A stretch of 64,000 nt of DNA from Amphiscolops sp. MND2022 (Eukaryota). Shown here in pieces: positions 32,201 to 35,254 of this stretch (position 1 is the first letter of the stretch; each line of letters opens with the position of its first letter). The stretch is taken from contig OZ076414.1 of assembly GCA_964187785.1 (NCBI GenBank), forward strand, positions 51,274,001 through 51,338,000, read 5' to 3'. The notes under the pieces were generated by a model. The model was not told the origin of the DNA and ran no database searches. It saw only the letters and a program-made list of their open reading frames with translations. The translations under genes were made by a program, and so were the position numbers.

Positions 32201-35200
32201 CCTTTTTTGTTAGAAAATCTCCGACTAGAATGGTACGTTTGTCTTAGACCATCATCACATCGACTAAAAACTTGACAGAGACAGGAGTTGATCCATACTT
32301 GTAGGTTCATCAACTTTAAGAAAACTGGCTCGTTCGAGGTTCAGAAATATTTCTACAACTTCAAAACTTGAAATGAATTTCGAGAAATAAATCTATCTGT
32401 TCTACATAACTTTTTGGTAAGTCATTTAATAGAAATTTTCGCAAGTGGATATTTCACTTCCGGAGACTTCCAACATCTGCAGAAGTGCAAACCCAGAAAT
32501 TTTCACTTAAAGCATCTAAATGTTGAACAATAAGCTTTTTAGTGATAATGACCATTCGCGTTAACTCATTTTATGGTAGTGAAAGCTTGCAGCGAACTAT
32601 CAAATAGTCAATCTGTACTCGCCATCATAGAAGAGGAACTTAATGGCCGAAAAGGCGTTTTGTAAGATTTGAAATGTATGAAGAAATGGTAACATTGCTA
32701 AAAGTTAATTTCTCACATACTGTGTTTGCTTCAGACTTCTGCAATCAGAATTAATAAGTTAGGAATGCGATTCTTGCTGCCAAAATGATTGAAAATGGCT
32801 ATTTTCCAAATTCCGAAGATGTTGAACGTAACAATTTTGAGCAAGTTTACGCAACGCATCCGATACGAGTAAACTTTGGTTATAACGGCGGCGCTTGAAG
32901 CTAAGCTAGCTGGCAGAATTTCTTGGTGCCAACTTGGTAGCCAACTATCACAGTGACTATCTTTTTCTCTCGTCAAATCGGAAATATCTGAAAAGTCCAC
33001 TTTTTACAGACTTCTCGCCTAAGTGTCCAGAGTGTGTCTCGCCAAAAATATTTCAATTTTTTTCTCAATTCACAGAGCCACCTGAGACCAAAAGGCCCCC
33101 CTATGGATATTTTAGCACTACGAAAATTTTCGAAACTTTACAAGAAAAATTGAGAATTTTCGGCGCTTTTTGAGCCCTAAGCAGTGGACCGACTTTCACA
33201 AATAGTTGGTGTTGTTCATGTTAAACGTTCACTTGGAGACCACTAAAAAGTCAACGTTAGATGAGAACTTTTCATTAACCTTGATTGGATTGGTTCTGAC
33301 TCTTCTGCGAATTAGAAAATCCTCCAAATGAAGACTGTTGGCTCCTGTTTGATCGTGAAGAAAAAACACTGAAGTCTTCATCATTGCGTGCGTTTTTTCC
33401 ACTGAAATTATTGTCGCTTCTTCGATCGAACCCAGATTGATTAAAATTGGAACTTTTTGAAGCATGCTGTTGAGTATTACCATCGAAACCTCGAGACTGA
33501 TCATTGTCACGAGAGTGACTTGAAAAAGAGCCGTTTCCAAAACCTTGGTTGCCAAAACCAGAAGAAAAGTTTTCATTACAGTCATTGTTTAACGTTCCGT
33601 TGTTGAATTGATTGCACTTGCGGGCTGAATTTTCATTAAAAGTGCTATTCACATTCATCTTGTGATCATCGGCGAATTCATTAAAACTAGTTCTAGACTG
33701 TTGGCTGTCAAAGCCTCCTGCACTTCTGCTAAACCCTCCGGTTGAACCATGCTGGAAATTTGAATCAACGTGTGAGTTGCCCCCAAAAGTAGACTGATTC
33801 GCCTGATGTTCATGTGATTGGAAGGAATTGCGATTATCGAAGTTTCCACCCGAATTCGCTACTACATCTGAGGAATCGGTTCCAAAATTTCCACCAAAAC
33901 GTTGCTCTAGTCGTATCTTCAGCTGCATCAATTTGTCTTGGTTTCCTTTCAACGTAATGTCAGTATGGGCTTCAGTTTTGGATTCTTTAACAACGTCTAT
34001 CTTACAGTCAAAATCGGCTTGTAATTTTTGAACTGTAGCACCTCTCTTGCCAATGATTCTGGGAATCAGATCGTTTTCCACTGAAAATGTTTCCTCGACA
34101 TAGTTCCCAGATCCATTTTCTGAACCTTTTAAGACAGTGTTTTTAACATCCGAAAAATTATCATGGAATTCATTTTCAGGGGTTCTGCCAAAAGTCTGAG
34201 ACCCAAAATTTCCTCCACATGAGGAGTTATCCCCAAAACCGGCCGTATGATTAGTTATTGAGGGACCACCGGTACTTTGGGAGCTGAAAGGGGCACCGTA
34301 ACGTTCCCCTAATCGTTCTTTCAGCCTTTTCAGCTTGGATTCATCTCCCTTAAGCGTCACATCAGTGTGAGTTGTAGACGTTGATTCCTTATCGATGTCT
34401 ATCTTACATTCAAAATCATTTTGTAACTGTTGAATTACAGCGCCTCGTTTGCCAATTAGTCGAGGAATTAGAGCATTTTCAAGTGAAAACGTTTCCTCGA
34501 GGTATTTCCCATCAACAGTAGCGGAAGCACTAGTCACTTCATTACTGGCTCGAAACAGGCCATTGGACTGATTATCAGGACCTCGGCCGAACGACTGGAA
34601 CCCGAAACCTCCACTACTACTGCTTCCAAAGCCTGGTCCTTTATCAGATCTATCCCAGCCTTCGTTTCCAAAAGACGAGGAAGCAGACTGGTGAGAGGTG
34701 AAAGGGCCACCGAAGCGCTGACCCAGATTCGCTTTTAAATTGATTAGTTTGGCATGGTCGCCTTTTAATGTAACCTTTGTGTGGCTATCGGATTGTGAAT
34801 TGCGGTCAACATCGATCTTACAACCAAAATCAAGTTGCAACTGCTGAATGGTAGCACCTTTCTTGCCAATGATTCTTGGAATCAAGGAAGTTTCAACTGA
34901 AAAAGTCTCTTCTGTGTAATCGCCACTCGTATCCGCTTTATCGTTATTATCGAACTGGTCAGAAAACTCGTTTTCAGGAGCTCTGTTGAATGATTGAGAT
35001 GAAAAACCACCTCCTGTGCTTTGACTACCGAAATCACTGTTTCCAAAATTTGATGACCCATTTTCAAATCGACCTCCGCTGAAGGATGAAAACGAAGGCT
35101 GTGAATTGAAAGAGCCTCCACGGTTTCCGAATCTCTCCTGATTTGCGAACTTGCGAGCCCCGCGACCACGGCCTCCACTGGCGCCAGAATTGCCGGAGAA

Positions 35201-35254
35201 GTGGTCACTATTTTCGTACCTCCATCCGGCTTCGCTCACAAACTCCGCTGCCAT
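26099..35254 (-). CDS. DDX43: DDX43/HAGE-family DEAD-box RNA helicase with 3 KH domains; 6 coding exons, ~1206 aa
   Basis: Exons 35254-33280, 30924-30196, 29878-29645, 27964-27698, 27190-26971 and 26294-26099 sum to 3621 nt (1207 codons) with matching phases. Q motif, [36 protein letters not shown] and [10 protein letters not shown] are all present; [16 protein letters not shown] is DDX43/53-like. Confidence 0.9.
26971..27190 (-). CDS. DDX43: DDX43 coding exon 5: motif VI
   Basis: TTTCAG acceptor; [30 protein letters not shown]; AG|GTGAGA donor. Confidence 0.93.
27698..27964 (-). CDS. DDX43: DDX43 coding exon 4: helicase C-terminal domain, first part
   Basis: [13 protein letters not shown]...IHGGREQ...[10 protein letters not shown]; G|GTAAGA donor. 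Confidence 0.92.
28263..28585. mobile_element. MITE with ~22-bp TIRs and an 8-bp TSD, in DDX43 intron 3
   Basis: GGATCTCTTTCACTATGCCCCC ... GGGGGCATAGTGAAAGAGATCC; flanks CTTTCTTC and CTTTCTTT. Confidence 0.88.
29645..29878 (-). CDS. DDX43: DDX43 coding exon 3: DEAD and SAT motifs
   Basis: TCCCAG acceptor; [16 protein letters not shown]...TSATW. The 3' boundary requires a GG donor (see findings). Confidence 0.85.
30196..30924 (-). CDS. DDX43: DDX43 coding exon 2: Q motif to motif Ib
   Basis: TTTTAG acceptor; [30 protein letters not shown]; G|GTTAGT donor. Confidence 0.93.
33280..35254 (-). CDS. DDX43: DDX43 coding exon 1: FG-rich region with three KH domains
   Basis: 1975-nt open frame; [18 protein letters not shown] and [11 protein letters not shown] cores; donor G|GTTAAT, phase 1. 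Confidence 0.88.

Follow-up and report, generated by a model that had tools for sequence, protein, structure and literature searches.

On the reverse (-) strand of the window, the 64,000-nucleotide stretch of DNA analysed here, lies a gene that is best explained as a six-exon DDX43 gene, in which the first coding exon carries a linker-plus-KH module three times and is followed by a spacer, the helicase core, and an RGG/FGG tail (probability about 0.8). As far as sequence can tell, this three-KH form of a known helicase family is real, old, and under selection; it is not unique in kind, and as a variation on a known protein it is modest. All features of the gene described below are encoded on the (-) strand.

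The open reading frame which holds the KH domains spans positions 33278-35254 (659 codons) and begins at the first ATG past an upstream stop. Within it, exon 1 occupies 33280..35254, i.e., 1975 nt or 658 codons plus one nucleotide, from the ATG at 35254 to a donor G|GTTAAT after 33280, and it was seen in DNA contigs of four runs. The sequence-only reading had proposed a 1975-nt exon containing 18 FG dipeptides; the exon indeed ends at 33280 and 18 FG dipeptides were counted, compared with 7.2 expected by composition (p=0.0002, 10,000 shuffles). Outside the KH cores, the exon 1 protein consists of 19% S, 15% G, 13% N, and 11% F. It starts with an RG/FG-rich N-terminal head (aa 1-59, 35078..35254) and ends with an S/G/N/F-rich low-complexity spacer of ~190 residues between KH3 and the helicase (33280..33844), in which the linker motif is traceable only weakly and without significance. 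An FG-rich disordered region had also been suggested earlier, and the FG excess together with a pLDDT of ~50 in the modelled linker agrees with it; the non-KH part of the exon 1 protein is thus FG-enriched and predicted to be disordered.

Between the head and the spacer, three modules of ~135 residues each are arranged head to tail, and every module is composed of a conserved FG linker followed by a type I KH domain. The repeated stretches themselves cover aa 60-193, 199-331, and 332-469. Repeat unit 1 (aa 60-197, 34664..35077) holds the FG linker motif and the KH1 core (aa 113-184, 34703..34918), repeat unit 2 (aa 198-331, 34262..34663) holds the KH2 core (aa 251-322, 34289..34504), and repeat unit 3 (aa 332-470, 33845..34261) holds the KH3 core (aa 385-456, 33887..34102). 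The KH intervals put forward beforehand (about 34760-34912, 34346-34498, and 33944-34096) fall within these cores. The GxxG loops, which are all intact, are GKKG at residue 130, GKRG at residue 268, and GKRG at residue 402, and these positions reproduce the proposed loop spacing of 414 and 402 nt. The positions of the linker motif that are invariant across the three modules read FG...S..G.F..Q.F.R.P.N.....F.

Pfam KH_1 matched the exon 1 ORF with 123 bits over three stretches. Moreover, the AlphaFold (AF2) model of unit 1 consists of a disordered linker and, at residues 54-122, a beta-alpha-alpha-beta-beta-alpha fold corresponding to the KH1 core with pLDDT >90, and the top Foldseek matches of this model were KH domains of PCBP, hnRNP K, FUBP1, and Nova (TM 0.8-0.87, rmsd 1.5-1.8 Å). 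Three intact KH domains, as previously claimed, are therefore found by profile, by the fold modelled for KH1, and by its structural matches, and the module triplication that had been proposed corresponds to a linker-plus-KH unit repeated three times in tandem. A degenerate fourth KH domain was sought in aa 470-659, where only non-significant linker-motif traces were present. At 33640-33740 (aa 502-541), one of these resembles the linker motif over 18 residues as a fourth copy, weakly and below significance, and no KH domain follows; it could be left over from an additional unit or have arisen by low-complexity convergence.

A tandem layout of this kind could in principle be produced by false expansion of a single KH unit during assembly, and the repetitive layout alone speaks for such an artefact. 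However, the KH cores of the three units are only 62-69% identical in DNA and hence are not mis-assembled copies of one unit, and the contigs of four public DNA runs (one sample) span the entire exon, being colinear with 32061-35400 without indels, so assembly did not create the three units. On the basis of this divergence and colinearity, an artefact was ruled out, its probability being practically nil. Fourteen allelic SNPs were found in exon 1, including seven synonymous and seven nonsynonymous ones, none of which breaks the frame.

The gene model was built under the guidance of orthologues, and its splicing was predicted from DNA. Intron 1 (30925..33279) holds a very high-copy repeat at ~31241-31837. 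As a side observation, the summed contig depth over this repeat (31241-31837) reaches 1e5-1e6 compared with ~20-80 in the flanks, with many variant joints. Exon 2 (30196..30924) begins at an acceptor TTTTAG|GT, the phase of which matches exon 1, and encodes the IDW region, the Q motif, and DEAD motifs I-Ib. Exon 3 (29624..29878), the 3' end of which is uncertain, encodes the DEAD and SAT motifs, and exon 4 (27698..27964) encodes the first part of Helicase_C with motifs IV-V. The end of Helicase_C, including a motif of ten residues, is encoded by exon 5 (26971..27190), while exon 6 (26099..26309) encodes the RGG/FGG-rich C-terminal tail and the stop codon, in agreement with the RGG/FGG-rich C-terminus noticed earlier. 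The spliced model comprises about 1218 residues, and helicase motifs Q through VI are all present.

The exon 1 donor and the exon 2 acceptor (30924) are both in phase 1, and the reading runs across the junction into IDW...KDFY and then into the Q motif. From these matching splice phases, we infer that the KH domains and the helicase reside on one mRNA. Alternatively, the locus could comprise two transcription units or be subject to heavy exon skipping, in which case the 659-codon ORF would encode a separate multi-KH low-complexity protein or be mostly spliced out, and the helicase would start from the ATG at 30991 without KH domains. This alternative draws on the presence of that ATG in the frame of exon 2 and on the exon 1 donor GTTAAT, which is off consensus. 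It is nevertheless considered improbable, since the phases of donor and acceptor match and the ORF closes right at the donor, one codon beyond it; since no KH exon other than exon 1 was found within 25001-36000; since purifying selection acts on the linker motif as well as on all three KH domains; and since, in every DDX43 orthologue with a readable upstream region, one and the same gene encodes a KH domain ahead of the helicase.

In the six-exon model, the donor at the end of exon 3 is odd. The strong donor there, GTC|GTATGT with its last exon base at 29628, is in phase 0, while the acceptor of exon 4 needs phase 1, and use of this donor would lead to an immediate TGA after residue 985, before RecA2. 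Only with a weak donor 4 nt downstream (T|GTCAAA, 29624) is the frame kept, at the cost of an 8-residue insertion relative to the orthologues. The odd donor could reflect an insertion that is tolerated, unproductive splicing used for regulation, or the onset of decay. The last of these, taken to its end, would mean a decaying gene, in which a small insertion at the exon 3 donor has put the helicase half out of action and the tri-KH protein is truncated or not made; the phase conflict with its premature TGA and the lack of any sequence difference at this donor site across the four runs are compatible with it. Against decay, none of the six exons is interrupted and the helicase motifs are all intact, a canonical GT donor restoring the frame is available 4 nt downstream, allelic variation contains no frame breaks, and the gene is single-copy, hence without a back-up DDX43. 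We thus regard a decaying gene as very unlikely, and the intact six-exon gene is retained as the model.

Two observations were made in the neighbourhood of the gene. First, a gene encoding a VTT-domain protein (TMEM41/SNARE-associated type), with its last exon at 35749-36036 (-), ends ~500 bp upstream of the DDX43 ATG on the same strand, which implies that the intergenic and promoter region is short. Second, a 1.6-kb DNA duplicate of DDX43 exon 4 and part of intron 3 (46247-48102 versus 27597-29213) shares the strand of the gene and sits ~11 kb upstream of it; the two copies are 92-94% identical overall and ~98% identical across the exon, and the exon copy has a 1-nt deletion.

The scan for Pfam KH_1 and DEAD that had been suggested for this locus found both, with KH_1 in the three stretches given above; Helicase_C lies in exons 4 and 5, and the core is complete (Q, I, Ia, Ib, II, III, IV, V, and VI). 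The best solved relative of the helicase exon is DDX53 (3iuy, E=1e-52, 182 bits), followed in the PDB by DBP2 (172 bits), DDX17 (165 bits), and DDX5. Vasa chains reached only 98-101 bits compared with 182 bits for DDX53, which argues against orthology to DDX4/Vasa. Among 120 helicase matches, the best identity was 60%, and all named matches were DDX43, including those of insects, ticks, fish, birds, Lottia, Helobdella, Nematostella, and Acropora. The DDX43 identity assigned beforehand is hence upheld by both the best solved relative and the named matches. The helicase core is 68-76% identical to those of insects, Lottia, Nematostella, and Acropora alike, the distance to all sampled phyla being about equal, and in the helicase tree the gene falls in an unresolved polytomy within DDX43. 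Across the 1.07-Gb assembly, DDX43 is single-copy, the next helicase match being 40% identical, and the KH type of exon 1 was found only in this exon. Taken together, the sequence comparisons indicate that the gene is a single-copy DDX43-type DEAD-box RNA helicase of an invertebrate animal.

The three modules are mutually 60-65% identical (KH cores 62-65% in protein). Pairwise comparison of the KH cores gave pS values of 0.63-0.85, meaning that synonymous sites are saturated, and pN values of 0.21-0.24; the triplication is therefore old and each copy is under purifying selection. In a tree that also contains 28 further KH domains of DDX43, the three are united in a clade of their own (support 100/97), and none of them exceeds 30% identity to any other DDX43 KH domain compared. 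These data show an ancient, lineage-specific triplication, of which every copy has been kept by purifying selection. As a rough time scale, the KH domains of fish and bird DDX43 are 59% identical, which would put the age of the triplication at some hundreds of millions of years. Given this age, a three-KH DDX43 is likely to be shared by relatives of this animal. In all three units, the usual IGxIIG is replaced by IPRIIG, which occurs elsewhere only in the single-KH orthologue P0217 (L009), and this orthologue grouped weakly with the three (89/79).

According to previous studies, DDX43 of human and Bombyx has one KH domain (PMC7949032, PMC8025031, PMC11261784). KH domains of the orthologues were counted from the genomic region upstream of the helicase. 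One KH domain was found in Lottia (L008), in Helobdella (L019), and in each of five further organisms (L009, L012/13, L015, L017, and L018), while two were found in L016, a locus from Logan run SRR14074426. No KH domain was present within 10 kb upstream of the helicase in L014, and the upstream region of Nematostella (L007) is interrupted by gaps and minisatellites throughout; neither locus bears on the KH count. The one-KH norm claimed earlier thus holds both for the human and Bombyx literature (PMC7949032, PMC8025031) and for all orthologue loci in which KH domains could be read except L016. In the latter (L016:6331-8238), an intron interrupts the first of the two KH domains, the second is whole, and a DEAD exon follows. 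The two KH domains of L016 are mutual best matches at 51% identity and lie outside the clade of the three KH domains of exon 1, so that the duplication was independent. As in the gene described here, more than one KH domain precedes the helicase in L016; unlike here, the two are only ~20 residues apart and are not separated by long FG linkers. It was also observed that L016 has a DDW/DNW-repeat N-terminus in place of the FG linkers and comes from a compact genome. In Lottia and L009, an RGG/G-rich N-terminus also lies ahead of the KH domain, so that the low-complexity-plus-KH unit looks ancestral from these sequences and was multiplied here.

The sequence-only reading had further put this architecture as not known to be described. 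In the portions seen of the literature mentioning DDX43 and KH domains, more than one KH domain in DDX43 was not reported, in line with this; the architecture is not unique, since L016 has two KH domains. Word-indexed searches for homologues of exon 1, and of KH1 by itself, returned only the query within their scope of 362-1153 aa, which is below the ~1200 aa of full-length relatives. With residues 100-460 as the query, an exhaustive search of 1.84 billion representatives gave, beyond the query itself, only generic multi-KH proteins, the next best at 113 bits, and shows that a close relative is absent from that library. None of the 150 matches of the exhaustive search contained a DEAD domain, and the search is blind to diverged multi-KH DDX43s. 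A feature search of the ESM Atlas returned generic KH clusters only, with scores <0.8.

The single KH domain of human DDX43 was reported to bind short pyrimidine-rich single strands at micromolar affinity and to improve unwinding (PMC7949032), and the KH domain of Bombyx DDX43 binds RNA and is needed for ATPase activity and for RNA release from Ago3-piRISC (PMC8025031). Germline-biased expression of DDX43, or a role in the piRNA pathway or spermiogenesis, is known only from other species (PMC8025031, PMC10294715), and by orthology with Bombyx and mouse DDX43, the three-KH DDX43 probably acts in germline RNA or piRNA metabolism. Each of the three KH domains would bind ~4 nt of single-stranded RNA weakly, as the single KH domain of human DDX43 does. 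Carried on flexible linkers, the three together would provide avidity and a longer or composite recognition site, and this avidity would hold the helicase on its RNA targets. In addition, the FG/RGG regions may help the protein enter RNA granules. The distance between KH domain and Q motif is >300 residues for all three KH domains, longer than in the orthologue sequences compared, and a direct contact between KH domain and core such as that proposed for Bombyx may therefore differ here.

A bolder reading was also considered, in which DDX43 has gained KH copies repeatedly and adaptively, three here and independently two in L016, and in which the present protein has become a multivalent RNA scaffold linked by FG/RGG sequence, one that either nucleates condensates of the germ-granule or piRNA-processing kind or is retained in them, with the linker GGFGSQxFGRxPENEF as a short interaction motif. 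We hold this reading to be conceivable and rather doubtful. As the change concerns the domain copy number inside a known family, the value of the gene is comparative and moderate. The three selected KH domains here and the independent pair in L016 amount to a natural test of the effects of KH number and spacing, through which the RNA affinity, specificity, and localisation of the helicase could be tuned.

Compared with DDX43 (HAGE) and DDX53 (CAGE) of vertebrates and with Bombyx DDX43, the gene has in common a DDX53/DDX43-like core and an N-terminal KH domain of type I whose GxxG loop is basic, and, as in DDX43/DDX53, an IDW...KDFY region precedes the Q motif. DDX43/DDX53 have one KH domain, whereas three are present here, each preceded by a conserved FG linker motif; the disordered ~190-residue spacer between KH3 and the helicase, the RGG/FGG tail, and the total length of ~1218 residues also set the gene apart from them.

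The GLH helicases carry FG repeats, and CCHC zinc knuckles are found in GLH and in many invertebrate Vasa proteins. With Vasa/DDX4 and C. elegans GLH, the present protein shares the combination of a DEAD-box helicase with a glycine-rich disordered N-terminus bearing RGG or FG. However, Pfam found no zf-CCHC in exon 1 or exon 2, the FG dipeptides stand in an S/N-rich context instead of a periodic FGG array, and Vasa and GLH are devoid of KH domains, of which there are three here. The earlier description of the region as Vasa/GLH-like thus survives for the composition of the FG/RGG-rich disordered N-terminus and fails for the remaining features, the gene not being a Vasa orthologue, and the likeness is only an analogy.

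Several type I KH domains per chain, as observed here, are also characteristic of multi-KH proteins, such as PCBP and hnRNP K (three KH domains), FUBP/KSRP (four), IGF2BP, and vigilin, and PCBP, hnRNP K, and FUBP are among the best structural matches of the KH1 model. KH clustering has been shown to raise affinity and specificity (PMC11261784). Unlike the present gene, PCBP, hnRNP K, FUBP, KSRP, IGF2BP, and vigilin have no helicase, and their KH domains are not recent tandem copies of one another; the linkers of the three-KH DDX43, in contrast to those of these multi-KH proteins, are long and predicted to be disordered.
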